Sequence record: NC_047815.1
DNA: 64,000 nucleotides
Strand: one strand, 5' to 3'
Position 1 is the first letter of the stretch. Each line of letters starts with the position of its first letter. Of the stretch, positions 6,365 through 61,222 are shown piece after piece. The notes below the pieces were generated by a model. It did no database searches. It had not been told where the DNA came from and was given only the letters and a program-made list of their open reading frames with translations. The position numbers and the translations under genes were made by a program.

Positions 6365-6373
6365 TATTTACAG
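6365..6373 (-). promoter_or_regulatory. CTGTAAATA promoter-like motif
   Basis: Intergenic, upstream of 6333. Confidence 0.55.
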
Positions 6374-11078: not shown

Positions 11079-11340
11079 CTTTTTTCTCTGTTATGAATTG
11101 TAACTGACCTTCGATATTTACAGCTTTAATCGACTGTCCTGTGGAGGCGAATAGTCCATTCAACACTCCGAGAAAATCTGCAACGCAACAGCCTGATGAT
11201 GTGCTGAATACGTCAATGTCTGGCGGCACATCGCCTGGGTTAAGCTGCCAGCAAGTACGCAAGACAGCTAACACAAAGTCAGGACGATGCACCAAGTGCG
11301 TGTTGAGAAAGTCACACGCTTGCTCGGTGCTTATTGTCAA
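11047..11340 (-). CDS. Hypothetical 97-aa protein
   Basis: Overlaps the polymerase stop and the clamp start. Confidence 0.6.
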   Translation of the reverse strand: MTISTEQACDFLNTHLVHRPDFVLAVLRTCWQLNPGDVPPDIDVFSTSSGCCVADFLGVLNGLFASTGQSIKAVNIEGQLQFITEKKDEEMPTSQKD

Positions 11341-14300: not shown

Positions 14301-14498
14301 GAACACAGCACCAGTCGTGCCGCTGAATATCTTACCGTTTTCTAAATCTTCTGACGGCATGTGGTCAAGAATAAACAATGCCTTGCCGCCCTTATTCGTC
14401 TTGCTCGTGCCTTTAAGCACACGAACAAAATCGTAACTCTGCACGTCGGAAAATGACTTAGGCAGATCAAAGTCTAGTGCCAAATGTTTTGTCTTCAC
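11337..14498 (-). CDS. Family A DNA polymerase with N-terminal UDG-like domain and 3'-5' exonuclease (1053 aa)
   Basis: ExoI AVDTETE, ExoII NAKFD, ExoIII YAGLD; TGRTSASDPNLQQVP; motif A DYSAHEVR; motif B RNAVKTVIFGLIY; motif C VHDS; GTG start. Confidence 0.95.
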   Translation of the reverse strand: MKTKHLALDFDLPKSFSDVQSYDFVRVLKGTSKTNKGGKALFILDHMPSEDLENGKIFSGTTGAVFLNQIQYLEDVFPLKTTIDDWNFLVVSYNMFKTYEKSEQYKSDAAEAFSQRIRDMIVEYKPDYVMTFGTEPFKALNADKINYSGGLAHNWYGVEIPTSLKTKNGKHKFVHVPNVSYNAVLNPRNIKGTSYTLGYMSRWMLPMFQKGMPYRIPQVTCGKNRNWNLKYVTTIKGVEKVLRMMKKAKKVAVDTETENLNRIKNKLMTVQLSSDGKTAYVIPIYHRDSPFSPKELRKISDLMRDYFEENQNKYQIYVNAKFDLNVLRSNFGIRSYAANVWDIQAGEFAFDENAKNLMTLFGHGYYNLANLAMQYGTTVYYDVTFGKEKRATIADVDLDESVQEYAGLDVIVPFLIAEQQVKRAKDIKYAKYNSMVSEQISDQIHAFSIMETTGAMADIDYLFKLNLPNSPINEEIKNVERDFLNSPEVKAANKAILVDDDVPKFGLMGRVEVTKFDMSKNEHKQVLFFDVMKLKPLKEGEKKRDNGKPTGKLDKDFQEAYKDVPLVSLYNKLGKAYKLKNAYVNSLLRLWGESEDFKHDRSIRPTYSYLGVVTGRTSASDPNLQQVPSRSELGKLIKRILIARPGRLLIKVDYSAHEVRGWSIISGDAEVAEVFEVGRRLRHRYRTVPDPWIHHLVDIEGDVHKINASYFFGVPIMEVTKPIRNAVKTVIFGLIYQQGDKGLAKSTGREVEEIADIKAKFLKRFPIGLKWFEKIKRFAHEHYYVESPVGRRRHLWGFMVPESHREANMVHAACDRRAVNSPVQGFGSDLMMSAIRILDRMKYEYWKANGKYPDFALNVSVHDSLTVDCAYDWIFLALDMIERAMTSAVVQIVKERHGFEFTSVPEIDFEIGASEKDVGGWDFSYAKLRKLIQKGLEQKRDELGEKDLDVEQVLDSIMENQYSLMSDWMKKQLWANNIKIRSMDKVNPLTKLDQKNIKQWHRELPDNTAKYEAFEAEERAKKAAAATAVSAPAKKKIKIPKSIVKKAVRGYLN

Positions 14499-16410: not shown

Positions 16411-19400
16411 TCACACGTCTGTTGATTTAGACTGAGTGAGTTTAAGTTTTTCAAGTGCAGCGATGCATCGTTTGAAATTAGTAACCTTGTAGCCTGCTTT
16501 CATGATCTTGGTCAAGCGTGCTTTAGCCGTAGCCACGTTCTTAACAAAGCCAATCCACATACCACTAGATTTCTCAAACGTACCGAACTTACGCATGTTC
16601 GGAATCTTCTGCCCTGCGATACGCGCCATCTTAGGGTTAGTGGCAAGGTCGAACATGATACGCATACGATCTTGCATAACCATTGGGTAGCATTTGACGT
16701 GTGCTTTGTCGTTTGCTGCCTTGTGGCGAATCAGGAAGAACTGTTTCAGGCTCGACTGCATGTGGGTTGCAATCTGAGTATCAAACGTCAAGCGTTTGCC
16801 TGTAAACATATCCTGAATGAACTCCAGACGCTTAGAACTCGGACCATCGAATTCCAATTTCTTGGTGATTTCGATATAGTCGAGGAAGCGTTCAAAGTCC
16901 TCGTAGTAATACAGGTCGATAAACACATAGTCACCGAACTCTACAAACTCAAACTGCTTCATCGATTTTGCATCGGCATCTGCGGAATCAGCATACAGCG
17001 CAACAAAGCCGTTGTACACAGTCGGAGTAATCTCCAGACTCATATCAGCGCCAGACAAGTCTTCGAGGCTAACAGCTTTGGTACCGACACGTACTGCCTT
17101 CGCAGCAGGCTTGATTGTGTTATTGAGTTCAGGCAGGGTTTCAACACGACGCACGCGTTTAGCCGCTTCCTTAACACCCTCATTAACAGGTTTCTTCTGC
17201 GCGACATTCTCAGCACGTTTCTTGGCGCGAGCCGTTTCACGTTCAACCTTGATGACTTTCTTGCGAGTCTCGGTCGTGTTAACAGTTGCTGTTTCGTCTT
17301 GAATGCTTTCTTCCACTTCAATACGATTGGCTTCTGCGTTAGCACGCTTACGATCCTGTTCAGTTGCCCAAGGCTTACGCACTTTGAAGAACGTATCAAG
17401 GTCGCGTTTGCCTACTTTCATTGCACAGTGAATTTTGGTTGCTGGGATAGTGACAAGTTCTTCACTGCCAGCAAGACGCACACGCACAGTTGAAATAGGG
17501 CTGTCTGATTTCAGCTTGCCATCAACGTTACGCACGTTAACACCAACGATGATACCGTTACCGAACTCAGTCACAACAGGCATACGATGCACACTGTTTT
17601 TCAGCGTCTCACCATCACCGAAGTTCTGACCACGTGCCCAATCAAGCAGACGCACAAGACCCCAGTTGTTACGGTCTGGAATCTTCTGGTTAGCAACGAT
17701 AGGGAACTGATCAAGCACACGGAAGTTACGCAGTGCAGGCTCTGGAGTCAGAGGCAGCATTGCAGCAACCGTAGTCTTACGCATTTCTGCGAACTCAGCG
17801 GTTTCGATTTCGTTGAGGTCACGCTTGGCAAGGAAGTAGTCGATGAAGTCTTCCATGGTGTTTGCGTTGATCAAGAGGTTTTTATTCATCTTGATTGGAG
17901 GCAGTTCATACTTATCGAGATCAGCATAACGCTCGTTGCCTTTCTCATCGAACTGAGTTTTCTCCAGCGTCTTCCACATGAGACGTGCAACTTTACCAAC
18001 TTCCAGCGTGCGGTTAGTCATGATCCAGTCGATGAATACCAGCTCACGTTTCATGTCACCAGCTTTGCCGTTCTCGTCAATCTGTGCCGCAGCAACATCA
18101 GGACGGAAGATACGTGCGGTTGACTGGTCATACACACCAGGAGACCAAGGCGTATCGACACGAATGATACGACTACCCATCTGCATGTTGTGGCCTTCTG
18201 AGATTGCCTGTTCGTTGGCAATCAGAATCTGCACATCAGGGTTGGTCTTGAACGCATCGAGGTTAGCAACTTTGTCTTGACCCAGCTTGCCGACTTCACC
18301 GTGGAACAACACAGCAACGCGCTTGTATTGCTCAGGTAAGGCATTGTAAACTGCGTTAGCACTACGAGTATAGCGCGTAAACACAATCAGCTTGCCCTGC
18401 ACCTCTTCTTTCCAGTATTCTGGATCTTCTGGAGGCGGAGTCATTGACGGCGGCAGCATGTTACGACGATAACCATCGGTCTGCTTACGGGCCATGAACT
18501 TACGGCCTTGGTAAACAGCAATGTCATACTCTTTCGGTACAACGCCTGGTGACCAATCGTAGGTCTGCTGTTCGTTGCCTGTCTCTGGATCGGTATCGCG
18601 TTCCTTCTGAACTTCAAAGTGCTTGCGAATACGTTCAACCACAGTCAGCACTTTAACAGAGGTGAACTCTTTGACGCCAGCCTGCTCGAAGGTCTCACGC
18701 GCAATGTCGTCGCCCATCGGGTCAGTCAACATCTGCTCCATACGCTGGAAGTACAGATTGAGGTCAGCGTTTGATGCAAGCAGTGCGCCCAACACATCGC
18801 CATCTTCTGACGTGTCTAAGTCGTTCGGGTCAATGCCGGATTCATCTTCTGACTCACCACCATCACCAGTACCTTCTTCATCATCCTCGTCACCGCCACC
18901 AGCTTTCTTCTTCGCGTCAGCAGCCGCTTGATCAAGAAGGTCTAACAGCTCTTGATACATCGCATCGTAGGTCTGTTTGTGCAGGTCAGAGTATGGAACC
19001 TTAGCCGAGTCAATGTCAACGTTCAGGAACGTATCGATTGGGTTAGGAAGCATAAACGCCCATGACTTACGCTTGTACGCAATGAAAGCTGTGTGATTCG
19101 ACAGACGACTGTGCGCACGACGAATCATGGCAAGCGTACCATCCCCTTGATCAGTAATATCAAGGTTGTCGCCAAAGATAGCAGGAGTTAACAGCGCAGC
19201 CTGACCAACAATGTCTGACACGCGGTCTGTTACCAGAGTACCAGTAGCGATACGCGCATAGCGAACACTTGGTGCGGTAAAGATTGCTTTGGCGTTGAAG
19301 TGTACCTGACTACCTGACTGACCGCCAGAGTAGTTCTTGACCTTGTGCGATTCATCGATAATCACGTAGCTAAAGTTGAAACGATTAACAAACTCAACAG

Positions 19401-22266
19401 CACCACGAATACGAACACGCACGCCGCCAATATCAACGTTGAGAACACCAGTCTGCAAGAAGCTGAGACCAGCAACGAAGATAGTATTCTGAGGCGCCTG
19501 ACTGATAACATCATAGAGACGTTCCTCACCCCAGGTGTTCACAGTGTCACTGGTGATTGGAATTGCGTTCCAGCCATCAGCAATCTTGTGCAGATCGTCA
19601 CACCAGTTAGCAACAAGGTTGGTAGGGCACACGATCAGAGGACGAATATTCGGCTCACCGAGTTCGTCAAGCTCTTTCATCATGGCCATGATATCGGTCA
19701 GACCGATAATCGTTTTACCACCACCAGGTGCGATAAAGATTGTTGCATAGCGTGGACGACGACGCAGCGTCTGGTGAGCACCCAGCTGGTGAGGCATCAG
19801 TGCAGCACCTTCTTTCAGACCAGGCACGCGAATGTCTTCGATGCTGATACCTTGATCTGGTTTCAAACGCTCAACTTCGTTCTCAGCCTGTTCAAACACT
19901 TCCATGCTGCTCGGAATCACATCGCTGTACATGGTAGCGAATGGAAGAATCATGTGAATCAAGCGGTCGGACGTAGGTGCTGCGGCATCTTCTGCAAGGC
20001 TGGAGAACAGCTTTTTGCGATCACCGTTTTTGAGTGCAGCACACATCTGACGGAACAAGGAACCACCGAAGTAGTTGTTCAGTCGAGCGAGGTCACTCAG
20101 TTTACCGTTCTTGCTCATCTGGAAGAAATGCGTATGGTCTTGCATCGCTTCTGTAGCAGCCGTGATACTGCCCATTTCCTGCATCAAGGTAGTGATGAGG
20201 TTTGAGCCGCGCAGACCACTAGCATCGTTGAGCACGCGAGTAATCGTGCGCAACAGCAACAGTTCAGGAGGCATCTGATCGTTAACATCAAAGTTGTTTT
20301 CAATCAGGCCCTGATACAAGTTGTTGTCATAGCTTGAATCAGTCAGAGAGGCATCATCACCAGTAAAGCCAAGTTCTTCACGCGCTTGCTGCACAAGAGT
20401 TTTAACGTCAGGTGCTTGCTTGGTTTTTACCATGTGTCCATAAGTAGCACACACGTGGGCGATGATAGAATACAGCTGGTCTGTACCTTCACCGTTAGCG
20501 TATTCAATCTGCTTGTCGTTTGCGCTGAGGATGAACTTACCGTTAGACGCTTCGGCGCGAGCAGCAGCCAGTTTCAAGTCTTCTGCGGCTTGGAACTTAG
20601 GGCTGTAGCTCTTAGCAATCGATTCGATCACAGTCGGCAAGTTACGGAAGTTAGGACTTTCACCAGGTTCAGCGAAGTCATAGCCCAACATGTCCGCAGT
20701 GTCGAGTGCGGTAGGAATCTTAGCACCAACAGTACGAGTAGCGTTAACGCTGATACCACCAGAGCTTGACGTTGACACAAGCACAGAGAAGTCTGGATCA
20801 ATACCGATACAGATGTTGCCGTATTTAGACAATGACTTGGCTTCTGTCTGCATCTTCTGGTCAATGTCCAGATCGTTCTCACGCGCAGCAAACACAGCGG
20901 TACGCAAGGTATCGTGGTCAGTGGACAGAGGAATACCACGAGCAAACAGCGTCTCAAGCACACGGTTCAGGTCATGCTCATACTTGGTTACTGTTGCTGG
21001 GTCAATATCATCACGCTTAGGCAAGCAGGCCATCGTACCGTTAGGCATGATAGTCAGACCACGATCGTCCGCCAGCGACTCATGCACGCTGTAGCCGAAC
21101 TTCTCACGCAGTGCTTTCATCTTAGGCAAGGTAGTTGCTGAGGTAACATAGCGTGGGATAGCAGCACGACGAGTAACGCTGCCACTAGCACGGCTTGTAC
21201 CTTGAACACGCAGATAGTATTCAGCCCAGCCTTGGAACCAGCGATAAACACACATAGCAGTCAAGTCAGTAGCACCTTGACAGATGTATTCAACAATCGG
21301 TTTTTCCAAGTTAACAATGATACCCGCTTCGGCACGCACGTCAACAGCGAGGTTGACAGGGTTAATCTCTACAGGCTGGTCTTTGCTAACACGCAGCGCC
21401 TGCATTTTACGATCAAGCAGGTTACGACCAGGAACACTACGCACACCAAGCTGCATGAACGGAGCAAGAACATCAGTGACTTTCTTGTCCATGTTCTGGA
21501 AGATGTTCAGATCTTGGCTTGACAGCGAAGGATGAATCGCGTACAGGATGTTGTTGAGTGCAGACCAATCAAAGTCGAGATTGACACGCACCATACGGCA
21601 ATAGAACAGGGCTTGTCCACCACGACGAGGTTCGCCGAAGATGGATTCATGCAGTTGGTTAGCAGCACGAATAGCGTTCTGTGCAATCTCTGCCTGATAC
21701 ACGCGGATGTTCTTGTCTTGGAACTGCTCGTCGTTGTCGAGACGAGGACGGTTACCACCTTGTTCGTTGAGTAAGTTGAAGTTACCCATCGCAGCAGCAG
21801 GCGTAGACGAAGCTGGCGTGCCGCTCATGATAATGTCATGACCTCCAGGGAAACGCTCTGAGCCTTCAATGATTGCGCTGTCACGGCTTGACATGTTAGA
21901 TGCCAGCAGCGTTTTAACATCACGAATCAGTTTAGGTGCATTGTACAGCGCATCGATCTTAGCAACTTCACCACCAACCATGGTTCCGATACGACGAGCG
22001 AACTCACCATCATCAGCTTCTAAGGCATCTTCAAATTCAGCAGCGTTCTCAACGATAAAGCCAATAACGTTGTAGGCCAGATAAATTCGAGCAACAGTAG
22101 CAGCAGCAAAGCGGCCTACCTGTTCGAACAGGGCACGGTTCTTACCGCCCTGATACATCTGGTCCATGCGCTGTGCGACATCGGGATCAATCGGATGTAC
22201 AGCAAGCGCATTCTCAACGCTTTCAGCAATCTGACTTGAGCCAGTTTTTGACGTACTAATAAGCAT
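16411..22266 (-). CDS. Giant SNF2-family ATPase/helicase (1951 aa)
   Basis: LMPHQ, APGGGKT, LIVCPTNLVANW, IIDESHKVKN, ATGT, LIVFTRY, SEGHNMQ, DTPWSP, QSTARIFRP. Confidence 0.9.
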   Translation of the reverse strand: MLISTSKTGSSQIAESVENALAVHPIDPDVAQRMDQMYQGGKNRALFEQVGRFAAATVARIYLAYNVIGFIVENAAEFEDALEADDGEFARRIGTMVGGEVAKIDALYNAPKLIRDVKTLLASNMSSRDSAIIEGSERFPGGHDIIMSGTPASSTPAAAMGNFNLLNEQGGNRPRLDNDEQFQDKNIRVYQAEIAQNAIRAANQLHESIFGEPRRGGQALFYCRMVRVNLDFDWSALNNILYAIHPSLSSQDLNIFQNMDKKVTDVLAPFMQLGVRSVPGRNLLDRKMQALRVSKDQPVEINPVNLAVDVRAEAGIIVNLEKPIVEYICQGATDLTAMCVYRWFQGWAEYYLRVQGTSRASGSVTRRAAIPRYVTSATTLPKMKALREKFGYSVHESLADDRGLTIMPNGTMACLPKRDDIDPATVTKYEHDLNRVLETLFARGIPLSTDHDTLRTAVFAARENDLDIDQKMQTEAKSLSKYGNICIGIDPDFSVLVSTSSSGGISVNATRTVGAKIPTALDTADMLGYDFAEPGESPNFRNLPTVIESIAKSYSPKFQAAEDLKLAAARAEASNGKFILSANDKQIEYANGEGTDQLYSIIAHVCATYGHMVKTKQAPDVKTLVQQAREELGFTGDDASLTDSSYDNNLYQGLIENNFDVNDQMPPELLLLRTITRVLNDASGLRGSNLITTLMQEMGSITAATEAMQDHTHFFQMSKNGKLSDLARLNNYFGGSLFRQMCAALKNGDRKKLFSSLAEDAAAPTSDRLIHMILPFATMYSDVIPSSMEVFEQAENEVERLKPDQGISIEDIRVPGLKEGAALMPHQLGAHQTLRRRPRYATIFIAPGGGKTIIGLTDIMAMMKELDELGEPNIRPLIVCPTNLVANWCDDLHKIADGWNAIPITSDTVNTWGEERLYDVISQAPQNTIFVAGLSFLQTGVLNVDIGGVRVRIRGAVEFVNRFNFSYVIIDESHKVKNYSGGQSGSQVHFNAKAIFTAPSVRYARIATGTLVTDRVSDIVGQAALLTPAIFGDNLDITDQGDGTLAMIRRAHSRLSNHTAFIAYKRKSWAFMLPNPIDTFLNVDIDSAKVPYSDLHKQTYDAMYQELLDLLDQAAADAKKKAGGGDEDDEEGTGDGGESEDESGIDPNDLDTSEDGDVLGALLASNADLNLYFQRMEQMLTDPMGDDIARETFEQAGVKEFTSVKVLTVVERIRKHFEVQKERDTDPETGNEQQTYDWSPGVVPKEYDIAVYQGRKFMARKQTDGYRRNMLPPSMTPPPEDPEYWKEEVQGKLIVFTRYTRSANAVYNALPEQYKRVAVLFHGEVGKLGQDKVANLDAFKTNPDVQILIANEQAISEGHNMQMGSRIIRVDTPWSPGVYDQSTARIFRPDVAAAQIDENGKAGDMKRELVFIDWIMTNRTLEVGKVARLMWKTLEKTQFDEKGNERYADLDKYELPPIKMNKNLLINANTMEDFIDYFLAKRDLNEIETAEFAEMRKTTVAAMLPLTPEPALRNFRVLDQFPIVANQKIPDRNNWGLVRLLDWARGQNFGDGETLKNSVHRMPVVTEFGNGIIVGVNVRNVDGKLKSDSPISTVRVRLAGSEELVTIPATKIHCAMKVGKRDLDTFFKVRKPWATEQDRKRANAEANRIEVEESIQDETATVNTTETRKKVIKVERETARAKKRAENVAQKKPVNEGVKEAAKRVRRVETLPELNNTIKPAAKAVRVGTKAVSLEDLSGADMSLEITPTVYNGFVALYADSADADAKSMKQFEFVEFGDYVFIDLYYYEDFERFLDYIEITKKLEFDGPSSKRLEFIQDMFTGKRLTFDTQIATHMQSSLKQFFLIRHKAANDKAHVKCYPMVMQDRMRIMFDLATNPKMARIAGQKIPNMRKFGTFEKSSGMWIGFVKNVATAKARLTKIMKAGYKVTNFKRCIAALEKLKLTQSKSTDV

Positions 22267-48262: not shown

Positions 48263-48845
48263 TGGTTGATACTCCTTTGAGACCGCGTATCACATAGTCG
48301 CTCAATCCGATCAACATGGAACGACCGACAGACGTATGCATACGTTGATTAACTGCGACGTTTACAAGGTTGTTCACAGCTTCTTCGATATGTTGTCCCG
48401 TTCTTGCACAAACGTGCCCGATCATAACTTCAGGAGATTGAGCAAAGAACGTTAAGATCTCAGCGTCATGCAGAATCTTTCCTTTATCTGTCATGGGCGC
48501 TAGTGGTGTTTCTTGGTCTCTGATAAAACTAGTTACAGATGAGCCATCTATTTTATGAGACGTATTGCCAAATACCTTAACGAGACTCAGGGCAGCAGGC
48601 ATTGAGTACAGGTTGTCAACTGCCACAATGCGCAAAAACAAACTTGCTGCCAATAGGTTGTGATCGATGTGCAGACGTTCAGAGGTCAGAGTTAAAATGT
48701 CGTGCGAAAGACCAACAACGTTTAGCGAAAAGTCTCGGGTATACACAGGGTGATGTTTGTTGTGAGTGTCAAAGAAACTCAGTGCGGAACTAAGTCCGCT
48801 TCGTTGCAACAAAACCTCACCCTTGATGCTGTTGATGCGGTACAT
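48243..48845 (-). CDS. Hypothetical 200-aa protein
   Basis: Coupled ORF. Confidence 0.7.
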   Translation of the reverse strand: MYRINSIKGEVLLQRSGLSSALSFFDTHNKHHPVYTRDFSLNVVGLSHDILTLTSERLHIDHNLLAASLFLRIVAVDNLYSMPAALSLVKVFGNTSHKIDGSSVTSFIRDQETPLAPMTDKGKILHDAEILTFFAQSPEVMIGHVCARTGQHIEEAVNNLVNVAVNQRMHTSVGRSMLIGLSDYVIRGLKGVSTNVERGP

Positions 48846-49813
48846 CAGTCAGCACGTATTTCTTTAAGGCTGTTCTTGATAGCCTTACGCAAGGTCTTGC
48901 CAACATCAATTCCAGTAACGTGACGAGCAAAGGTGTAGGCAAACAGTGACTGTGCGTTTTTCATTGCAGCCTTCTCAAGGTCAGGACGACCCTCGGCAAC
49001 TTCAATTTCACCAGGCCACAGTTCAGCAACAGCAGCCGAGTCCTGTTGAGCAATCAGTTCCAGTTCTCTGACAGAAATAGAACGTTGACGCGCAATAGAG
49101 CGGAATACCAGATCAACAAATGGCAGCAGGTCTTCGGACACAACGTTCTTGACGTCTTTAGCGTCACCAGCATTGAGGAAGTCTTCAAGCAGGGTAGCTA
49201 AGGTTGCTTTGTCCAGACGGTGAACGTTGCGCAGTTTGTTGAAGGTCATCAACCAGCGAACTTTACGCTTTGACGTCAGCAGGTGAGTCCACACACTTTC
49301 CCCCAGCGCGTACAACAAGCGATTATAAACATCTTCGCCAACTGCGGTGCTGTCTAAGAAAATGGTAATCTCATCCTGCCACTCTTCCTTGCGGAACTTT
49401 GACTTGAAGCTGTGCGTCTTTGATCCAGACTGCTGCACAAAGTTGATAGCGCCAAGACGACGCAGCGCCTCATGCAGACGATATTTGTCGATGATCTTAG
49501 GCAAACGCTTGACACCGATACGCGCTGATTTGCGAATCTCGTCTGGTCGGCCATACAGATGCATCTTTGGAAGTGGGCTAATGTCAGGCAAGCTGTGGTA
49601 AGGTCTAACAGTAACGCCAAACGCGCTGGCACCTGGTTCAGGGTCAGCACCAAGAACGCAGAGTAAATCTACGCTCGGACTAAATTTGATTGTCTCTACT
49701 TCCGGCAGGTGCATGGTGTTTGCGAGAATGCCTACAGTCTTGCCTGTTGCAAGTACCAACACATTCTTGTTACCCGACCGAACGACGAGATAATCGTTTT
49801 CTTTATGTTTCAT
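48845..49813 (-). CDS. Hypothetical 322-aa protein
   Basis: Long ORF downstream of the CTGTAAACA variant at 49864-49872. Confidence 0.8.
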   Translation of the reverse strand: MKHKENDYLVVRSGNKNVLVLATGKTVGILANTMHLPEVETIKFSPSVDLLCVLGADPEPGASAFGVTVRPYHSLPDISPLPKMHLYGRPDEIRKSARIGVKRLPKIIDKYRLHEALRRLGAINFVQQSGSKTHSFKSKFRKEEWQDEITIFLDSTAVGEDVYNRLLYALGESVWTHLLTSKRKVRWLMTFNKLRNVHRLDKATLATLLEDFLNAGDAKDVKNVVSEDLLPFVDLVFRSIARQRSISVRELELIAQQDSAAVAELWPGEIEVAEGRPDLEKAAMKNAQSLFAYTFARHVTGIDVGKTLRKAIKNSLKEIRAD

Positions 49814-49840
49814 TTTAAATCCCGAAATTCTATCGTGCAG

Positions 49841-49999
49841 TTAAATTACGACTGTGTAGGAATTGTTTACAGAAACCAGCAAGCGATTCTGGCTGAGACT
49901 TTTCTTAATCTGCTCATAGGCTTCGACCTGATGAGGAAGAAGCATAGGACGGATGTTCTGCAATTGTGGTTGTGTGCGACGACGGCCAGTTGCAGTCAA
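49841..49999 (-). CDS. Possible 52-aa mini-ORF
   Basis: TTG..TAA fills the gap: MTATGRRR...MLLPHQVEAYEQIKKSL...; weak RBS. Confidence 0.35.
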   Translation of the reverse strand: MTATGRRRTQPQLQNIRPMLLPHQVEAYEQIKKSLSQNRLLVSVNNSYTVVI

Positions 50000-50000
50000 C

Positions 50001-50531
50001 TCACTTTTCTTTACGGACATCGGCTGTTACCTCACGCGGTAAGTGGCAGGAAGAAACGCAGCTAGCACACCAACTTCCTGAAGTGCAGGACAGACTGGAA
50101 ACTATTGGTTGATGATGATCGTCAAGAACAATAATCAACTGTTCGAACCAATGGTCAGTATCATGCATTGCCAACTCAAGCGCGGCAATGTCATAGCTGG
50201 TGGCTATCTGTCGATCTATAACAACGTATTGTGGGCGACTGCTTGATGCAATATCACCAGCAATCTGACCCACACCCAAACCTTTAGGAACAATGTATCG
50301 TTCAATCTCTGCCGTGACTTCGCGTTCGTCTCGGGTGATCATTGTTAGTTCAAAACCAAATGCTTGCATACGTTCAACGAACACGTGGTCGAAGATTCTA
50401 AAAACAGAACGGTCAACGGACACGTCTACTACAGATATACCAAGTGGGCGATCTACGCGGACTGTTGCGCGAAAGCCTTCTACTTGGGAGAAACTCGAAA
50501 TCAGAGCATTAACGATATGGGCTTTATACAA
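50001..50531 (-). CDS. Hypothetical 176-aa protein
   Basis: TTG start; Cys-rich C-end. Confidence 0.6.
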   Translation of the reverse strand: MYKAHIVNALISSFSQVEGFRATVRVDRPLGISVVDVSVDRSVFRIFDHVFVERMQAFGFELTMITRDEREVTAEIERYIVPKGLGVGQIAGDIASSSRPQYVVIDRQIATSYDIAALELAMHDTDHWFEQLIIVLDDHHQPIVSSLSCTSGSWCASCVSSCHLPREVTADVRKEK

Positions 50532-50580
50532 GGTGTTGTTGTCTCACTAAGAGGAAAAATGAATCAATATATTATTGGTA

Positions 50581-50727
50581 TTATTCGTCGTCGGGATCAA
50601 CGCCGACTTTGCGGCAGAACTCGTCGAACTCTTCTTCGGACATTGTTTCCATAGCTTTGTTACGAACAATGTCCCAATGCTCTTCGGTTAATGAACGAAG
50701 AAACATCAACTCATCTTCATTAAACAT
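50581..50727 (-). CDS. 48-aa acidic mini-protein (below the track cutoff)
   Basis: GGAG + ATG: MFNEDELMFLRSLTEEHWDIVRNKAMETMSEEEFDEFCRKVGVDPDDE. Confidence 0.7.
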   Translation of the reverse strand: MFNEDELMFLRSLTEEHWDIVRNKAMETMSEEEFDEFCRKVGVDPDDE

Positions 50728-50729
50728 AG

Positions 50730-51068
50730 TTACTCCTTATCAGGGTCTCGTTGAATGAACGCATCGGATTTACCTAACTCGATTTCCAACATGCGTTCAA
50801 GGTCAAAGCCGTGTAGAGGATGTTGTGCAGGAAACTGCTGATCAACCTCTGACTTTTTCTTGTAGTAAACGAAAGCAGGCGTGACGAACTCTGACTTTTT
50901 GTTGAAGTCAAAGTTTTCAGCATTGCGCAACACCTTCTGCCTAGCCCGCTGTTTATTGCTGCGGTGTCGGTCAAGACAACTCTTAGTATCAAGGTCGTCA
51001 AAGATACCAGTACGACGCACGTACCTAAAGTTCGGATGAACACTGATATGTTTTACGATTGCAGTCAT
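50730..51068 (-). CDS. Hypothetical 112-aa protein
   Basis: Overlaps the stop of the upstream gene. Confidence 0.65.
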   Translation of the reverse strand: MTAIVKHISVHPNFRYVRRTGIFDDLDTKSCLDRHRSNKQRARQKVLRNAENFDFNKKSEFVTPAFVYYKKKSEVDQQFPAQHPLHGFDLERMLEIELGKSDAFIQRDPDKE

Positions 51069-52042
51069 CTGGAATATTTCCCATAGACGCGATATATCAA
51101 ACCTTCCGTACGTTCGATAATCGCATATTTAATACTGCGACTTGGATTATATTCACCAGAAATCATTTCTGAAACATGAATATTCTTAGCACTACCAACA
51201 TCAATAGAGGCAGCGCGAAGTTTAAACCCAGTACCAATTGAGAAGTTTTGATTGGACTCAGCACCAACAAGCGCAGTTGGCATAGGTCCTTTCTTTCCTT
51301 TGAAAATCCATTTATCCCAAATAGCGTTACATGCTTTTGTACCGCGAGTAACAATCGATCGAGGTACATCGCCACCAATCTTTTTCCTTAGAGCAGTTAT
51401 ATATTGAGAAGAAGGCTCGGGTAAGGTTTTCTTGATTGAAGTTTTACGCAGCTTCTCATTCCAAGAATCGTAAGCTATGACTTTTGCTTTACGATAATGG
51501 TCTAATATCACTGCCTGTTCAATGTTAGCCTCAATCAAGAAACAGAAAATATTGGGATCATTCTCACGGCGCTCATTGTGTTGCTTGCGCAAGCGAGTGT
51601 TTATTTCGTATTTAATATACGAAGCCCAATTATAGATACAAACCAAATGCAGCAGGTCTGTGTCGCGTCCTTTTCCCACAGCCCAAAACACAAGCGGGAT
51701 TGCATAAGCTAATATGCAATCCTTATCAAACATAGCCTTCTTCAATTTTTCAATATCAATCGCATTCTCATCTTGAGGCGAAAGAAGAATCTCACATTTT
51801 CTGTGACTTGTTGCCAGTGAACTATTACCCTCATACATTTCATCAATGGTTGTTTCACCAATAAGATCAAGTGCCTGCTGCGGAGTAACTTTTGGCCAAG
51901 TATCAAGATTCAGCAGAGGTGCCTGCCGCATTTTGAATTCGTACAAAAAGAGAAAATCGTTAACTGTCAGACGAGCAGGCAACTCAAATTCTTTTTGGTC
52001 AGACACCGACGCGGTCGACGCCGGGCGCTTTGCCTTAACCAT
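51065..52042 (-). CDS. Hypothetical 325-aa protein, AT-rich
   Basis: GAGG RBS; follows the PolA-like gene. Confidence 0.75.
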   Translation of the reverse strand: MVKAKRPASTASVSDQKEFELPARLTVNDFLFLYEFKMRQAPLLNLDTWPKVTPQQALDLIGETTIDEMYEGNSSLATSHRKCEILLSPQDENAIDIEKLKKAMFDKDCILAYAIPLVFWAVGKGRDTDLLHLVCIYNWASYIKYEINTRLRKQHNERRENDPNIFCFLIEANIEQAVILDHYRKAKVIAYDSWNEKLRKTSIKKTLPEPSSQYITALRKKIGGDVPRSIVTRGTKACNAIWDKWIFKGKKGPMPTALVGAESNQNFSIGTGFKLRAASIDVGSAKNIHVSEMISGEYNPSRSIKYAIIERTEGLIYRVYGKYSR

Positions 52043-52051
52043 TACATGTCC

Positions 52052-53710
52052 TCATTCTTTTTCGTAATATTTCGCATATGCTCTATTTACAGTATTCTCT
52101 TGATTGCCAGACACCGTTTTAGACATAATGCATCGTTTGTCGTTCTTGAAGGTGTGGCCATTTTCCCAAACCTTGTCAAACAATCGAATTGCGTCAGTGG
52201 TTGTGCAGAATGGCTTTTCCTCCATATCGATACAATTGTTGTAAGTACCACAAACGATAGCTCCATCAAACTCAGCACTGCACCAAAGATTTTGAGCAAG
52301 CACCTCAAGAAGTTTTTGGCTCTCTCGACCTTGAATGTAATGACTCAAAATCGAATAACGTTCCTTCTTGATTTTAGTGAAGGGTATTTGATACGAACAT
52401 TCAACATCGTTGACAAATGAATAAACCGCATTACGATTGTAGGCTTTTTCGATCAATCGATCAATCAATTGAGATACAATATCCGCCGCAGGTTTATAAA
52501 TACTTTTCCATTTCTGCCATATGCCCAACACATAGGCATTTTGCGCGAGTTCAGTTTGTTTTGGAGAATCAGGTACGATAAGAGATTCGAGAACTTTAAG
52601 AACTTTAGAATCCTTCCACAAGGCTTTGGCCAAAGGTGTTAACACTGATCTGCGGTTGTCACCAATAGACACAGTTATTTTATACTGATTCTGCCAGCCC
52701 TTGTAGATTCCACCAAAGTTTAACGTCTTGGCAGTGTCGCGCGTTACACCTAACGTTTTAGCCAAGTAACCATGATCGATATGAATAGTATCTGGTATTT
52801 CCAGATCGTTTTCTTCAAGAAGTTCTTTGAGAATGGTTATATGAGCCTGACTCATATCATAGTTGGTACCATATGTATGATCAAAACACAAACGCTTAAC
52901 AGGTTTAAGAAATGCCTGACTGATACCAAACATACGACTGCCGACATCGTTGATGTAATACTGGTCATAGAACTCAACGATGCGATCTTTTTCCGTGCCA
53001 CCAACAACTTTGAAGCCAAGCCTAGACGCTCGTTCCAACACAGCCCATAGTTTGGAGTACGCGCTGTGCTTTCCGTGATAGTCGAGGTTTCTCAGACAAT
53101 CTAAGGCTCTATCAAGATAAAATCTGTAAGGACGTTGATTATCAATAGCCCTCTCGATAAGATCTGAAATTTCAGCCTTTCCTCGTCTAAGATTTGCTGG
53201 ACGCACTATACGGTGTTTGATAATCTCAGGCACTATGGAACGTTCAATCAGGTCAGACTTTGATTTAGCCTTAGGTCTACGTCGAAGCCTGACGGTTATA
53301 TCGTATAGAGGTTCATCTACGGTATTAGCCTTACGGAATTTCCGCTCAAATGATGGTTTAAACTGCCATTCTCGACAACGCCCTTTTATATAGTCGAAAG
53401 GCGTTACAATTAATACGGACTCCAGCCAAGCCTGAATTTCAGGATTTTTACGATAAACCAAGGCATATCTAGCAGGATTTCTACTGTCTCGAAACCAATT
53501 GTACGGTACAGGCACTTGATGCTTCATTTTACGTCCAGTAAGACCTGTGCGTTCTGCGATGTGCAGGAACAAGAAGGACAAACTGTCGTAAAATCTATTT
53601 ACATCTGCCCCAATAGGAACAGGGCAGCTTTGAATCGTATCCCAAAATACTTTATGGGCAGACATGGGAACTAAACGCGTCCCACGATAGGCAAAGTTGC
53701 TTTTCTTCAT
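52052..53710 (-). CDS. Divergent family-A-like (PolA/T7-RNAP superfamily) palm-domain protein, ~552 aa, no exonuclease
   Basis: Motif A NYDMSQAH, motif B RDTAKTLNFGGIYKG and motif C AEFDGAIV, in the correct order. Confidence 0.65.
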   Translation of the reverse strand: MKKSNFAYRGTRLVPMSAHKVFWDTIQSCPVPIGADVNRFYDSLSFLFLHIAERTGLTGRKMKHQVPVPYNWFRDSRNPARYALVYRKNPEIQAWLESVLIVTPFDYIKGRCREWQFKPSFERKFRKANTVDEPLYDITVRLRRRPKAKSKSDLIERSIVPEIIKHRIVRPANLRRGKAEISDLIERAIDNQRPYRFYLDRALDCLRNLDYHGKHSAYSKLWAVLERASRLGFKVVGGTEKDRIVEFYDQYYINDVGSRMFGISQAFLKPVKRLCFDHTYGTNYDMSQAHITILKELLEENDLEIPDTIHIDHGYLAKTLGVTRDTAKTLNFGGIYKGWQNQYKITVSIGDNRRSVLTPLAKALWKDSKVLKVLESLIVPDSPKQTELAQNAYVLGIWQKWKSIYKPAADIVSQLIDRLIEKAYNRNAVYSFVNDVECSYQIPFTKIKKERYSILSHYIQGRESQKLLEVLAQNLWCSAEFDGAIVCGTYNNCIDMEEKPFCTTTDAIRLFDKVWENGHTFKNDKRCIMSKTVSGNQENTVNRAYAKYYEKE

Positions 53711-53740
53711 CAATACTCGCTTTTGCTCTTTCTTGTTGGT

Positions 53741-53748
53741 TATTTACA
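53741..53748 (-). promoter_or_regulatory. TGTAAATA promoter-like motif
   Basis: Upstream of 53710. Confidence 0.5.
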
Positions 53749-54210
53749 CTTTCCTTGCAGATAACCAACTATAGGGAGTATCAATACGGTATAAGTCTCT
53801 ACTTCTAGCTCTCTCAACCATCATCATATCAGGCATATATCAGTCAGATCAGCGTGAGCATGAGCCACTTTGGGTCACAATAAATAGCAAAATCAGACCG
53901 AGTAGAATCGCACGCTGGTAGCTTCTAACATAGCCGATAGGTGCATAGAATTCAAATCCATGCAAAAAATGAATTATATAGCAAATCGTGTCCGCAATAA
54001 GGTATTTCGATCCGCGCTATACCTGTGGAGCGTATAGGGACACCGCTGGTCGATAATCGTAAGGTTGAGAATTGCTAAAAACAGCTAAAAATCGACGATT
54101 TCTCAGGGATTGCAATTCTAATCGCCTGACGGGCGCCTACAAGCATGTCCTGCGGGCGCCTAAAATCCATGATTTTCAGACAAATCTCACCGTATTTTCA
54201 ACGGCGAAGA
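53749..54210. other. Long non-coding region with direct and inverted repeats (origin or packaging-site candidate)
   Basis: AAATCG-A-CGATTT palindrome 54089-54101; CGGGCGCCTA at 54130 and 54153; GCTAAAAA twice (54074, 54084); AGAATTGC/GCAATTCT inverted pair. Confidence 0.35.
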
Positions 54211-54903
54211 CTATTTTTTACGGCTAACAACCTGATTCAGCTTTTTGCCTATCTGATTAAAGATACGCTGAACCGTTTCACCGTCGTGATTTTTAATCGC
54301 CAGTGCAAGCTGTTCACCCTGTTCACGGCTCAATTCTGGCATAACCAGCTTCAACATCTGACTGCGCATCTTAGCTGATGGGCTTTTACCACGCGATTCG
54401 CTGGCCATCATAGTTGTAGCAGGCACACCGGCACGCTGTTGGTCTTCCACAGGAGTAGCTTCTGCGCCGGAAGGACGATTCACAATGCGACTAGGGTAAT
54501 CACCGCGTAGGATAGCAGCCAAACGCTCGCCCAGAGGTGCAAACAGCCGTTCAAATTCAGTTTTAGGCTGCCAGCTCTCGTCGCTGCTGTAGGTAAACAC
54601 ATCTTCGGTCATGATACGACCCTGTTTGCCTTCAACAGCCTTAACAGCCTGCTCACGACCTACCTGCTGCTCATCGTCAGTCTTTTTCAACTGGACAACA
54701 GCACGAGAACGCTTAGGTGCCACATAGCTGCGATTGTCTTCTCCCAGAACCTTGCCTGTCAAGCGGCTTTCATCGCCCATACCACGTACAGGAATATCTT
54801 CAACCGGCTCAGCCTCGTTTGTATGATCCACTGTTGCCTTTGTGAAATTGCCGCGCTGCACACGATATTCGCGGCTTTCGCTCAAGTTAATTTTTAGCTT
54901 CAT
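54211..54903 (-). CDS. Hypothetical 230-aa protein (MKLKINLSESR...)
   Basis: Start reassigned to the ATG after GAGGG, just downstream of the upstream gene's stop. Confidence 0.75.
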   Translation of the reverse strand: MKLKINLSESREYRVQRGNFTKATVDHTNEAEPVEDIPVRGMGDESRLTGKVLGEDNRSYVAPKRSRAVVQLKKTDDEQQVGREQAVKAVEGKQGRIMTEDVFTYSSDESWQPKTEFERLFAPLGERLAAILRGDYPSRIVNRPSGAEATPVEDQQRAGVPATTMMASESRGKSPSAKMRSQMLKLVMPELSREQGEQLALAIKNHDGETVQRIFNQIGKKLNQVVSRKK

Positions 54904-54911
54904 GTTGCCCT

Positions 54912-56018
54912 CTATCGGATTAAGTAGCCTTTTTCGATGTTGTATTGCAATTCCTTGCGCTGAACAGGACGAGTGGTACACACCCATTCCCAAGCCTGTT
55001 GATGCGCTGTGCGCTTCTTCGGCACCTCAGTTACTTTCAACACATAACGACGATCCGGCAGCACCAGTAAATCTTCTGGTTCAATCAAACCTACTTTGGC
55101 TGGCAGCACAACCGTGATGTTACCGATTGTGAGTTCCTGATCGTAGTTCAAGGTGTTGGCTTCTTCGCTGATGTTGCAGTTAACGCCGCTAACACCTAGA
55201 TCAAAGATAAACACGCAATGCGTAAAGATCTCAACATTGCAGACACGAATAATAATATTCTGTCCACGATGCTTGTCTAGGATGTCCATAGTCAGTTCAG
55301 TTGTCTGTCCGTTGATAACTGCCATAGGACGTGTGCCTGCACCAAACACTTTATCGTTGCTGCGCACGCTGTAGGTTGCTGAACGGAAGAACTTAGGCAC
55401 TGTCACATCAAAGTCAACAAAGCCCTTTTTGACCACCTGCCTGAACGCCGCTGGTGCCACAGATTGGTCCAGCGTGTAGCCCTCAATGCCTCGAACGTGG
55501 TGATGTGACATAACTACATACTGAAAGCCAACGGCAGCAAATCCTGGCTGAACACCTTGACGATAGCAGATACCACAGTTGACAACGTTGCCTCCATCCC
55601 AGCGTGTATCAAACTCCTCGCCAGTTGTCATTGCATCTGCCGCATCGATCAATGCCTTGCCTGCTGGATTAATTTCATCGAGCGGCACAGCGGTAGGACG
55701 TCCACCACCAAACATTGTACGTGCGGAAGGCGCGATACTGACACCAGCAGATTGTGCATCGGATTCACGGGCTACCGATTTCATTGCACCGATCTGATCA
55801 TCAAACGCCGTGTTGTCAACGCGGTTGCAGCTACACACAAGACCAAACTTGGCTCGCTTGTAAATGATGCAGCGCGTGGCGTCAACTGCCAAAGCCTGTT
55901 CCACTTTGGACTGAACTACCTCGATAACACTGTCCAAACGTTTTTGTACTCGCTCACCCTCATAAGTCTTGTAGGTCTTGTAGGGCGTGCGTGGTTTTCC
56001 TCGATTTACCCAGCTCAT
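54912..56018 (-). CDS. 368-aa protein with CSC/CxxC motifs, possible head-closure or neck protein
   Basis: GAGGAG RBS; CTAATTT motif at 56040; function is inference. Confidence 0.35.
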   Translation of the reverse strand: MSWVNRGKPRTPYKTYKTYEGERVQKRLDSVIEVVQSKVEQALAVDATRCIIYKRAKFGLVCSCNRVDNTAFDDQIGAMKSVARESDAQSAGVSIAPSARTMFGGGRPTAVPLDEINPAGKALIDAADAMTTGEEFDTRWDGGNVVNCGICYRQGVQPGFAAVGFQYVVMSHHHVRGIEGYTLDQSVAPAAFRQVVKKGFVDFDVTVPKFFRSATYSVRSNDKVFGAGTRPMAVINGQTTELTMDILDKHRGQNIIIRVCNVEIFTHCVFIFDLGVSGVNCNISEEANTLNYDQELTIGNITVVLPAKVGLIEPEDLLVLPDRRYVLKVTEVPKKRTAHQQAWEWVCTTRPVQRKELQYNIEKGYLIR

Positions 56019-56998: not shown

Positions 56999-57007
56999 CT
57001 GTAAATA
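56999..57007 (+). promoter_or_regulatory. CTGTAAATA promoter-like motif (plus strand)
   Basis: Orientation flips with gene direction; upstream of 57048. Confidence 0.6.
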
Positions 57008-60111: not shown

Positions 60112-60150
60112 AAAAAAGGGAGGCCCCGTAATGAGGTCTCCCTTTTGTTT
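60112..60150. terminator. Bidirectional terminator between convergent genes
   Basis: AAAAAAGGGAGGCC...GGTCTCCCTTTTG. Confidence 0.8.
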
Positions 60151-61222
60151 ATGCCGCACGCCTTTTCTTTTTACTAACTGCTTTCTCAGCAGGCTTTCTG
60201 TTCCAGCCTAAACGTTTAGCAGGAATCAAACAACCTTTACCATATTTGTCACGCAGCACTGATTTCACTTCACGTATGATTTCAATCGGACAGTTATCTG
60301 GGTCTAGTTTGATCAACTTACCTTTATCATCTTTCTCACGAGGAAGTTTGAAGTGCTTTGATTTAAGACCGCTTGCACGAAACGCTTCATCAATCTTGCC
60401 GCGCAACAGTTTACCACCACCATCGTTATCAGTCATGGTATACACAGTACCGATATCAAGCATTTCAATTGAGCGAACTTTTGTTGAACCGAACTGCTCT
60501 GCACCCAACACAGCAAGAGCTGGAATGCCATACGACAACAAAGCAAGCGCATCACGAGGACCTTCAACAAGCACAACATAACGCAGCTTGTATTTGCGAA
60601 TCATCTTGCGTGTCAACTCAATCGGGAACAAGCCTTTATCTTTTGCCCAATCACCTTGTGAGTTTATATAGCTGGAGCCGTTCATCTGTTTAGACAGATA
60701 AGCAGCGACACCACCTATATATTTTGAACCATGCTTGCACGGAAAGAAACATACGTTTGAACCGGTACGCTGTGCATTCAACAGGCCACCAGCATCTTGC
60801 ACAAGTCTGCCTGGATAACCGCGCCACTCAACATCTTCTGGCCACTGCATGTAACTTGAACGACCGAGTGCTTTCATCAACAACGCTACTGATGCATAGG
60901 TACCAACTCGATTGCCAATCTTTTCATATGTCTGACGCAGCGCAGACAGCGAGTTTGTTCCAGCATCTTTTAACTTCCAGCCTTTGATGACTGCAAGACC
61001 TGCGTGCTCTGCAAGCTGATTCCAGTTGCCTCGAACACCACAACCAAAACAGTGATAAAACCCTAAAGGTATTTCCATACCAACTGATGTATAGATACCA
61101 CAGCTTGGTGTTTTATCGTGGTGAAACGGACAGCAGACCATCACTGTGTCACCATTATACTTCTTATCACCAGGCAGTTTGCCGATCTCTTCTATGATCG
61201 TCTGGTGAACGTCTTCGGACAT
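60149..61222 (-). CDS. dnaG: DNA primase (CHC2 zinc finger + TOPRIM), 357 aa
   Basis: CCPFHHDKTPS...HCFGCG; LVEGPRDAL; TDNDGGG. Confidence 0.9.
   Translation of the reverse strand: MSEDVHQTIIEEIGKLPGDKKYNGDTVMVCCPFHHDKTPSCGIYTSVGMEIPLGFYHCFGCGVRGNWNQLAEHAGLAVIKGWKLKDAGTNSLSALRQTYEKIGNRVGTYASVALLMKALGRSSYMQWPEDVEWRGYPGRLVQDAGGLLNAQRTGSNVCFFPCKHGSKYIGGVAAYLSKQMNGSSYINSQGDWAKDKGLFPIELTRKMIRKYKLRYVVLVEGPRDALALLSYGIPALAVLGAEQFGSTKVRSIEMLDIGTVYTMTDNDGGGKLLRGKIDEAFRASGLKSKHFKLPREKDDKGKLIKLDPDNCPIEIIREVKSVLRDKYGKGCLIPAKRLGWNRKPAEKAVSKKKRRAA

Follow-up and report, generated by a model that had tools for sequence, protein, structure and literature searches.

The window analysed here, a stretch of 64,000 nucleotides (nt) from record NC_047815.1, belongs to the Erwinia jumbo phage vB_EamM_Yoloswag (259.7 kb). 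The gene under study, at 52052-53710 on the minus strand, is gp214 of this phage (YP_009789619, identity 99.8-100%), and it lies between a gene-free region upstream and the small gene gp213 downstream. Its open reading frame (ORF) comprises 553 codons from a TTG at 53713 (52052-53713, minus strand); in the annotation, translation begins with the ATG at 53710 and yields a protein of 552 amino acids (aa). Residue numbers in the following text refer to the 553-residue count from the TTG. The product is named "hypothetical protein" in the record, and the protein was assigned to PHROG 30690 (E=0), a family of unknown function. Scans against Pfam, NCBIfam and PADLOC gave no notable match, and a single-sequence search of the PDB gave no match. 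A first-pass annotation of the letters had described gp214 as a divergent, exonuclease-less PolA-superfamily protein of the TV-Pol type, encoded in a genome that already holds a full family A replicase at 11337-14498. The replicase (minus strand) was confirmed by Pfam matches to DNA_pol_A (E 1.4e-54) and to DNA_pol_A_exo1, the 3'-5' exonuclease domain, and gp214 is a second polymerase beside this complete PolA enzyme. Further replication genes of the phage encode a clamp loader and a DnaG-type primase (60149-61222). The same annotation had found no exonuclease motifs in gp214, in agreement with domain and family scans that detected no 3'-5' exonuclease domain, motif or remnant; family scans likewise detected no domain beyond a minimal polymerase core and an N-terminal domain.

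For identification of the conserved positions of gp214, relatives were collected from protein databases. A word-indexed search of 5.8 billion proteins returned no more than ten close relatives, each encoded by an Erwinia jumbo phage, and a second word-based homology search with gp214 returned zero further sequences. When 1.84 billion cluster representatives were searched exhaustively with a profile, 22 distant relatives of comparable length were gained, at E-values from 1e-14 to 4e-4. A Pfam scan of gp214 and 23 relatives found a DNA_pol_A match in none of them. G258, R260, D286, K329, H458, G462, E464, E481, D483 and G484 were invariant among 23-24 homologues sharing 16-20% identity, and these residues fall in the motif order of family A polymerases. 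R260 corresponds to the Arg of TGR/NLQxxP, D286 to the Asp of motif A, K329 to the Lys of motif B and D483 to the Asp of motif C, with the QG motif between the last two.

Motif A, NYDMSQAHITIL, was recomputed to residues 284-295 (52829-52864, minus strand, as for all parts of gp214 given here). It belongs to a strand and helix of residues 283-295 (52829-52867) in which the family alignment and hhalign place the catalytic D286 and, at the steric gate, H291. The O-helix with motif B, RDTAKTLNFGGIYKG, carries R325xxxK329xxxF333xxxY337 and covers residues 325-339 (52697-52741), as supported by the invariant K329 and by hhalign. Motif C, AEFDGAIV, was recomputed to residues 480-487 (52253-52276), and the hairpin around it (residues 476-488, 52250-52288), with E481 and the catalytic D483, was seen in the alignment, in hhalign and in the structural model described below. 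All three motifs had been named in the first-pass annotation and all are present, with its coordinates shifted: motif A had been put at 52841-52864, and motif C lay about 8 nt off. The two Asp residues, D286 and D483, on whose conservation in homologues that proposal depended, are invariant in the 23-24 sequences.

The remaining elements of the core are arranged around these motifs. The thumb (52928-53128) consists of two long helices (residues 200-232) and a beta-hairpin (residues 234-248), followed by the invariant G258 and R260 of VGGRxFE..GGFQxLP, the counterpart of TGRLSS..PNLQNIP in PolA; its assignment comes from invariance, hhalign and the model. The fingers (residues 296-424, 52442-52828) include D313-H314 and a lineage-specific beta-hairpin insert at residues 345-358, according to the alignment and the model. 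"LSHxIQGxE" (residues 456-464, 52322-52348), with its invariant H458, G462 and E464, was matched by hhalign to the "NxxxQGxxxD" of PolA that precedes motif C. A C-terminal extension (residues 489-553, 52055-52249) contains a nearly invariant K500-P501-F502, which the alignment and hhalign also place in the group of gp030 from Microcystis phage Ma-LMM01. For motif C, most relatives have EHDG where Yoloswag has EFDG and PolA has VHDE. At the steric-gate position (E710 of Klenow, five residues past the motif A Asp), at least 90% of the family have Gln and Yoloswag has His291, which hhalign aligns opposite the Glu of PolA. The position equivalent to F762 of Klenow is Phe or Tyr in the family, as in DNA polymerases; gp214 itself keeps the F762-type Phe without the E710-type Glu.

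The atypical steric-gate residue, and the Phe that replaces the His of the motif C "HD" in Yoloswag, could be read as signs of an inactive polymerase-fold protein that serves in DNA binding or as a scaffold. We consider this highly improbable, because the metal-binding Asp pair, the O-helix Lys, the template-contact Arg and the QG motif do not vary even between very divergent sequences. Invariance of D286, D483, K329, R260 and QG at such divergence indicates selection for catalysis.

Comparisons of profiles and structures were then used to place the fold. In an hmmsearch against the PDB, the gp214-family profile found only motif B of Pol gamma (E 0.04-1). With hhalign, a PolA profile made from nine phage PolA polymerase domains was aligned to the gp214 family over 194 columns with all five motifs collinear (E 0.0019); the score was 35.4, against 14.0 +/- 2.2 and a maximum of 19.1 in 30 column-shuffled controls. 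This alignment was obtained only with the nine-sequence profile, and hhalign against a single PolA sequence did not succeed. The first AlphaFold model, made from ten close homologues, had a poor palm (pLDDT 68) and weak Foldseek matches. It was replaced by a second AF2 model from 24 diverse sequences, with pLDDT 88.1 and pTM 0.83. All 34 of the 34 top PDB matches of the second model in Foldseek belong to the PolA superfamily, including Taq Pol I, T7 RNA polymerase (RNAP), POLRMT, Pol gamma, T7 DNA polymerase and DpoZ, and the palm/fingers fold, whose absence would have spoken against the earlier proposal, is present in it. The Taq large fragment was aligned compactly over 310-340 columns with probability 1.0 and E 6e-3. 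The lowest E-value, 2.9e-3, belonged to T7 RNAP, and T7-like RNAPs including POLRMT and the N4 RNAPs were found at E-values of 3e-3 to 1e-1; T7 RNAP was aligned globally and loosely, with a root-mean-square deviation (RMSD) of 18-25 Å. Beyond its own family in BFVD, Foldseek ranked phage proteins and giant-virus proteins of about 1000 aa above canonical Pol I, and one of these giant-virus or phage matches is annotated with a replication origin-binding protein domain.

The Foldseek result bears on the alternative that gp214 is an RNA-making enzyme, either a very small single-subunit RNAP of the T7 lineage or an RNA primase, with a site or promoter read by the N-terminal domain. T7 RNAP has the best E-value in the PDB, POLRMT and the N4 RNAPs are also found, and the Glu of the DNA-polymerase steric gate is absent, being Gln in the family and His291 in Yoloswag. 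In addition, phages of this group are described as encoding sigma factors and lacking their own RNA polymerase (PMC7412058). We nevertheless think this alternative unlikely: the T7 RNAP alignments are poor where that of Taq Pol I is compact, a Pfam RNA_pol match is absent, and the position of Klenow F762 is occupied by Phe or Tyr as in DNA polymerases. Promoter sequences, which also argue against it, are considered with the region upstream of the gene.

TV-Pols were described by Iyer, Abhiman & Aravind in 2008 as minimal PolA-like polymerases with a two-helix thumb, an Arg-bearing hairpin, a two-Asp palm and fingers of the helix-turn-helix (HTH) type with RxxxK, and they were predicted to be primase-polymerases; a subset has an extra N-terminal domain (TV-PolN), and their hosts are mobile elements and viruses, including phage Ma-LMM01 (PMC2579912). 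In Ma-LMM01, gp030 is a hypothetical protein of 506 aa adjoining two transposase genes. The gp214 family was aligned to gp030 by hhalign with E 8.4e-11, and to the gp030 family with E 1.2e-13 and a probability of 98% over 368 columns, the score being 111.5 compared with 15.5 +/- 2.3 in shuffles. The canonical PolA profile did not detect gp030 at all. A search seeded with gp030 gave six relatives only and did not confirm the link to the species list of Iyer et al. The minimal TV-Pol core is complete in gp214, with the helices at 200-232, the strands at 234-248, R260, D286, R325xxxK329 and D483, and there is no nuclease fusion. Based on the fold, the collinear motifs and the hhalign E-value to the gp030 group, we are confident that gp214 is a PolA-superfamily polymerase of the TV-Pol type, as had been proposed from the letters. 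The TV-Pol class is already known, and gp214 is essentially a new and very divergent addition to this lineage. In the text of the 2023 PolA reclassification, Erwinia phages do not appear.

The N-terminal part, which the earlier annotation had regarded as an unrecognised region of about 300 residues, consists of a separate domain of about 195 residues and the thumb. The domain (approximately residues 14-195, 53129-53674) mixes helices and strands in the model, with a helix-helix-helix-beta-hairpin at about residues 71-118, and it is not an orphan, being aligned by hhalign to the N-terminus of Ma-LMM01 gp030. The gp214-gp030 alignment begins at residue 47 of gp214 (FLFLH...), indicating that the N-terminal domain is included in the match. 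The domain is probably the TV-PolN domain. In the model, residues 71-118 probably resemble a winged helix, and single members of the family give faint HTH hints in Pfam.

Comparison with better known polymerases shows both likeness and difference. As in Pol I/Klenow/Taq, T7 DNA polymerase and Pol gamma, gp214 has a palm-fingers-thumb fold and the motif order TGR/NLQ, A, B, QG, C; unlike these canonical family A enzymes, it has shorter fingers and thumb, E(H/F)DG in place of VHDE, and the extra DNA-binding-like N-terminal domain. It belongs to the same superfamily as the T7-like RNAPs (T7 RNAP, POLRMT, N4 RNAPII and vRNAP) and, like them, lacks the steric-gate Glu, whereas its 553 aa compare with 883 aa in T7 RNAP, and it shows no recognisable specificity loop, no N-terminal domain of the T7 type and no RNA_pol match in Pfam. 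CCPol of SCCmec is a DNA polymerase that becomes a de novo DNA primase when the small protein MP is bound (Bebel et al. 2020, PMC7581432). CCPol-MP is the sole enzyme of the TV-Pol class with demonstrated activity, and CCPol keeps the equivalents of E710 and F762 (PMC7581432); it is placed near canonical Pol I, in the CHEAP cluster (PMC10201439). Like CCPol-MP (PMC7581432) and the Pol-SSB pairs (Rice 2023, PMC10061031), gp214 is an exonuclease-less A-family polymerase that stands beside normal replication enzymes, which for the mobile element encoding CCPol-MP are those of its host. However, CCPol retains three exonuclease helices that bind MP, while gp214 has no exonuclease remnant. Downstream of CCPol, a small OB-fold protein and a helicase are encoded, and gp214 has no recognised MP-like or helicase neighbour; its N-terminal domain differs from that of CCPol, and it lacks the steric-gate Glu of CCPol.

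The distribution of the gene was examined by tblastn and by inspection of the loci. The Yoloswag type of gp214 was found in 16 phage records, and a second type, about 18% identical, in 48 more, including Dickeya phages JA11/13/29/33/AD1, Erwinia phages Y3, Alexandra and many pEa_SNUABM isolates, and Yersinia phage fHe-Yen9-02. In these 64 records of Erwinia, Dickeya and Yersinia jumbo phages the gene occupies the same locus, about 172-187 kb into genomes of about 250-267 kb, with two records having another coordinate start. The copies are annotated as hypothetical except for one "putative helicase" in pEa_SNUABM_5 (YP_010303014; 6004-7671 of locus L002), a label without support, as no helicase motif or family match was seen in members of the gp214 family. 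The neighbourhood of the phage copies contains a DnaG-like primase, a PD-(D/E)XK (Cas4-like) nuclease, a Holliday-junction resolvase and a clamp loader. The same synteny was found on a metagenomic contig of 193 kb, with a PD-(D/E)XK nuclease, a DnaG-like primase, a Big_6 protein, two small genes, a gap, the polymerase and a gene of about 380 aa, and with a clamp loader further along.

A third clade of relatives was found in chromosomes of Klebsiella spallanzanii, Hafnia paralvei, Scandinavium and an Enterobacteriaceae isolate, as well as in an Escherichia coli record of the plasmid collection (loci L007, L008, L019-L022 and L035). Searches of plasmids gave chromosomal or island copies only, besides one cyanobacterial plasmid without informative context. 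The islands are ordered as RadC, integrase, AlpA, a protein of about 380 aa and the TV-Pol-like polymerase, followed by variable defence cargo, which is a type I restriction-modification (R-M) system with an AAA_15 ATPase, GmrSD or a HEPN (RiboL-PSP) protein. The 380-aa neighbour matched Rep_trans weakly (E 0.005 and 0.017, under the Pfam threshold), and homology between it and the phage neighbours gp216 and gp213 was not detected. The RadC-integrase-AlpA context is of the kind that Iyer et al. described for the subset with an N-terminal domain, which places the polymerase in the island backbone, presumably in its replication part. These look like an undescribed family of islands with a TV-Pol in the backbone. 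In the maximum-likelihood tree, the Yoloswag, Alexandra/Dickeya and island types formed three well-supported deep clades, the mutual order of which was not resolved.

This distribution is only partly that of other TV-Pols. Like TV-Pols with a TV-PolN domain, gp214 has no nuclease domain and falls within the size range of 400-600 residues (PMC2579912), and its relatives occur, as in the TV-Pol subset, in integrase-bearing elements at R-M hot spots and in phages that keep their own replicase. In contrast to TV-Pol elements, gp214 is a syntenic gene of a whole clade of jumbo phages, always present and not an evident insertion. Neither an integrase, resolvase or transposase nor an adjacent helicase, such as a D5-like one, was found with the phage copies in the loci inspected. 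The protein further differs from other TV-Pols in being too divergent for Pfam and NCBIfam and in having Gln or His in place of the steric-gate Glu.

The gene is part of a hypervariable cassette (49814-54210), consisting of a non-coding region, the polymerase gene and 3-5 small genes, which is sharply bounded by conserved flanks. Directly downstream of gp214 lies gp213 (51065-52042, minus strand; 325 aa), a very fast-evolving gene with a TGTAAATA motif of its own at 52084-52091. Phages of the Yoloswag, Rivsvirus and Dickeya types retain it together with the polymerase gene (26% identity and E 2e-21 to positions 11687-12832 of locus L005), and an unrelated gene of 174 aa takes its place in Alexandravirus. 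We regard gp213 as a candidate partner of gp214. The rest of the cassette, defined by gene comparisons, is formed by the small genes gp212 to gp209 (49841-51068, minus strand) and ends before a conserved peptidase gene at 48845-49813. Between Yoloswag and pEa_SNUABM_5, protein identity was 83% for the Holliday-junction resolvase, 73% for gp216, 61% for gp215, 54% for gp214, 34% for gp213, 44% for both gp212 and gp210, 85% for the peptidase and 71% for gp207. Between Snuvirus SNUABM_7 and Alexandravirus SNUABM_2, the flanking proteins were 69-93% identical, the polymerases 23%, and the next gene had no detectable similarity; nucleotide similarity was lost at the end of the gp215-like gene and regained at the peptidase gene (cassette spans 4502-8348 of L036 and 4464-7891 of L037). 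In contrast, identity in the polymerase domain of PolA was 80-90% across 48 records. The polymerase gene, the non-coding region before it and three to five small genes thus behave as a single module that is replaced as a whole between related jumbo phages.

Joint replacement of the non-coding region and the polymerase is what is expected of an initiator and its cis site, and diversification driven by conflict would fit it too. The latter corresponds to an alternative in which the cassette is a selfish or conflict module, that is, a domesticated replication gene of a mobile element that plays no part in phage replication, or a counter-defence or superinfection-exclusion device with a polymerase that produces a decoy or signal nucleic acid. 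Hypervariability and exchange of the cassette among closely related phages fit such a module, as do the backbone position of relatives in integrative islands with defence cargo and the separate deep clades of the phage and island types; moreover, a TV-Pol element inserted within a phage genome was already described by Iyer et al. (PMC2579912). We judge this alternative improbable: no integrase, resolvase or transposase lies near the phage copies, each of the 64 records found has the gene at the same locus and with intact catalytic residues, and PADLOC gave no notable match.

Upstream of the cassette, two genes are conserved in the clade. The gene gp215 (54211-54903, minus strand) has its annotated start at 54903, and its longest ORF, from a TTG at 54993, overlaps gp216. 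The product of gp216 (54912-56018, minus strand) is rich in Cys and has CxC and CGIC motifs. They were assigned to PHROGs 21298 (gp216) and 31583 (gp215), both of unknown function.

Between gp215 and gp214, the ORF list and comparisons leave a gene-free region of about 460 nt (53749-54210), and a gene-free stretch of 220-670 nt precedes the polymerase gene in every readable context. The region is a candidate for harbouring a cis-acting site. By alignment, it contains an internal block of about 45 nt (53835-53879, minus strand; TGwGACCCwAA...ATCTGnCT) that is shared by four phages whose gp214 proteins are about 53-55% identical. At its other end (54163-54208, minus strand), a terminator-like hairpin after gp215 is followed by the conserved block GAGATTyGTCTGAAAATCwTGGATT, which overlaps a sigma70-like match. 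The sequence CGGGCGCCTAmAA occurs twice, 23 nt apart, at 54130-54165, and is not conserved in pEa_SNUABM_5. No conserved hairpin was found within 53749-54210, and scans of the window gave no Rfam family or tRNA. GC skew in the window follows gene orientation and gives no position for an origin. An 11-mer identical to the T7 promoter core, ACTATAGGGAG, is present at 53768-53778 on the plus strand; as it is single in the window and at least one match appeared in 27 of 100 shuffles, we attribute it to chance.

The gene-free region ends at a promoter-like motif, TGTAAATA, at 53741-53748 on the minus strand, 31-38 nt upstream of the gp214 ATG, which was recognised from motif counts, positions and relatives. 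This octamer has 15 copies in the window compared with 1.8 expected, and none of 100 shuffles reached 15. The copies start at 6365, 11115, 14542, 23947, 29318, 31302, 34028, 43168, 45969, 46375, 52084, 53596, 53741 and 61266 on the minus strand and at 57000 on the plus strand. All except one of the 15 are on the sense strand of the local genes, mostly 25-45 nt before a start codon and often just past a terminator hairpin, and variants occupy the matching position in relatives. The motif precedes the genes for PolA, the DnaG-like primase and the clamp loader as well as gp214 and gp213. TGTAAATA looks like a class of phage promoter in the manner of the T4 late TATAAATA, and if so, gp214 would be expressed along with the replication genes. 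As the motif also precedes gp214 itself, its recognition by host RNAP together with a sigma factor of the phage is more likely, which argues against an RNA-making gp214; so does the finding that the window holds no repeated candidate promoter besides TGTAAATA, the T7-like 11-mer being unique.

Based on these results, we propose a role for gp214 in the start of replication. The protein would be a catalytically competent TV-Pol without proofreading, built of a TV-PolN-like N-terminal domain followed by thumb, palm and fingers. Its N-terminal domain, which probably contains a winged helix, would seat it on a specific DNA site, and the upstream non-coding region, being co-inherited with the gene, is the best candidate for this site. 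A short strand would be started and extended by the palm (D286, D483) and the O-helix (R325, K329, F333, Y337) and then passed to the PolA replicase and clamp of the phage. In this role gp214 would be an auxiliary replication-initiation (primase-polymerase) module and not the bulk replicase. The module of non-coding region, polymerase and gp213 to gp209 is swapped as a unit among related jumbo phages. Plasmid priming proteins, e.g. ColE2 Rep, combine a site-specific DNA-binding domain with primer-making activity, and their gene adjoins and co-varies with the cis site. The logic proposed for gp214 is the same, with the differences that the catalytic fold of ColE2 Rep is unrelated and that the site proposed for gp214 is a candidate origin. 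We tentatively favour the reading of gp214 as an auxiliary priming or initiating polymerase, at somewhat less than an even chance. Its activity, priming, site specificity and sugar preference and the role of the non-coding region are what we infer in this reading, and the initiation role is suggested by the analogy to CCPol-MP, by the island backbone in which a relative stands beside a weakly Rep_trans-like gene, by the neighbourhood of replication genes, by the constant locus in the 64 jumbo-phage records and by the shared TGTAAATA.

Several observations weigh against an initiating role. The DnaG-type primase at 60149-61222 means that a second primase is not obviously needed. gp214 has neither an adjacent helicase nor a recognised small OB-fold partner, whereas a helicase and an OB-fold partner are present in the characterised CCPol-MP-Cch2 system and in TV-Pol-D5 fusions. 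Its nearest candidate partner, gp213, gave no match in Pfam, PHROG and PDB searches, and its fold is not recognisable by sequence. The Glu of CCPol and Pol I is replaced by Gln or His, so whether the product would be DNA or RNA is not predictable. Furthermore, the non-coding region shows few of the marks of an origin: conservation in 53749-54210 is confined to three short blocks (one just past the gp215 terminator, 53835-53879 and the promoter and ribosome-binding site end), the only repeat that could stand for iterons is the 13-nt one in two copies, which is not conserved, and there is no marked AT-rich stretch, the lowest 60-nt window having 32% GC against 41-42% around it. Predicted RNA folding of the upstream region exceeded that of shuffles, with z-scores of -3.9 to -4.6; as coding controls of this phage came to -2.5 to -3.9 and relatives ranged between +1.8 and -5.2, it was not counted as a signal. 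The fast evolution of the cassette would also fit a role in host interaction or counter-defence. Finally, the presumption that gp030 is the protein meant by Iyer et al. as the TV-Pol of Ma-LMM01 comes from its size, its motifs and the transposase genes beside it, not from their table.

As a further alternative, gp214 could be a specialised, non-priming DNA polymerase that acts in gap filling, in recombination-dependent or break-induced synthesis or in lesion bypass together with neighbouring recombination genes. The complete polymerase motifs and the absence of proofreading suit such an enzyme, a Holliday-junction resolvase and a PD-(D/E)XK (Cas4-like) nuclease are encoded nearby, and CCPol alone only polymerises and primes with MP (PMC7581432), an MP-like partner not having been identified for gp214. 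However, repair polymerases are not usually co-inherited as a cassette with a long non-coding region, nor usually found in the backbone of integrative islands, and the DNA-binding-like N-terminal domain and very fast divergence of gp214 are better suited to a specificity function. We therefore rate this alternative as rather unlikely.

A bolder form of the proposal, which we put forward as speculation and think unlikely to hold, is that gp214 is a site-specific polymerase of about 550 residues that would initiate de novo and accept ribonucleotides. It would then be the smallest RNA polymerase or RNA primase with a PolA fold, with a winged-helix-like N-terminal domain that reads the co-inherited non-coding site. 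If this RNA-initiating form were true, cassette swaps would define "specificity types" of replication or expression among co-infecting jumbo phages and enterobacterial islands.

The gp214 subfamily offers a tractable test case for TV-Pols, since cultured Erwinia, Dickeya and Yersinia jumbo phages carry it in the presence of a replisome that already holds PolA, DnaG and a clamp loader. The natural variants of the cassette are ready-made specificity swaps, and islands with defence systems carry relatives. The function of gp214, once shown, would explain a second, proofreading-less polymerase in large phages, and it would annotate PHROG 30690 together with about 64 gene records now named "hypothetical". 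With Gln or His at the steric gate, gp214 could also reveal how the PolA fold switches between DNA and RNA synthesis.

Two other large proteins of the window had features outside their recognised domains. The PolA replicase at 11337-14498 (minus strand) has about 230 residues before the exonuclease domain and a Lys/Ala-rich C-terminal tail of about 140 residues past the polymerase domain. The phage PolA segments that were aligned stop before this tail, and as these loci were trimmed to the tblastn match (flank 0), the presence or absence of a tail in those polymerases does not follow from them. The ORF of 1951 aa at 16411-22266 (minus strand), the remainder of which is without a match, carries SNF2-related and Helicase_C domains in the middle of the protein.

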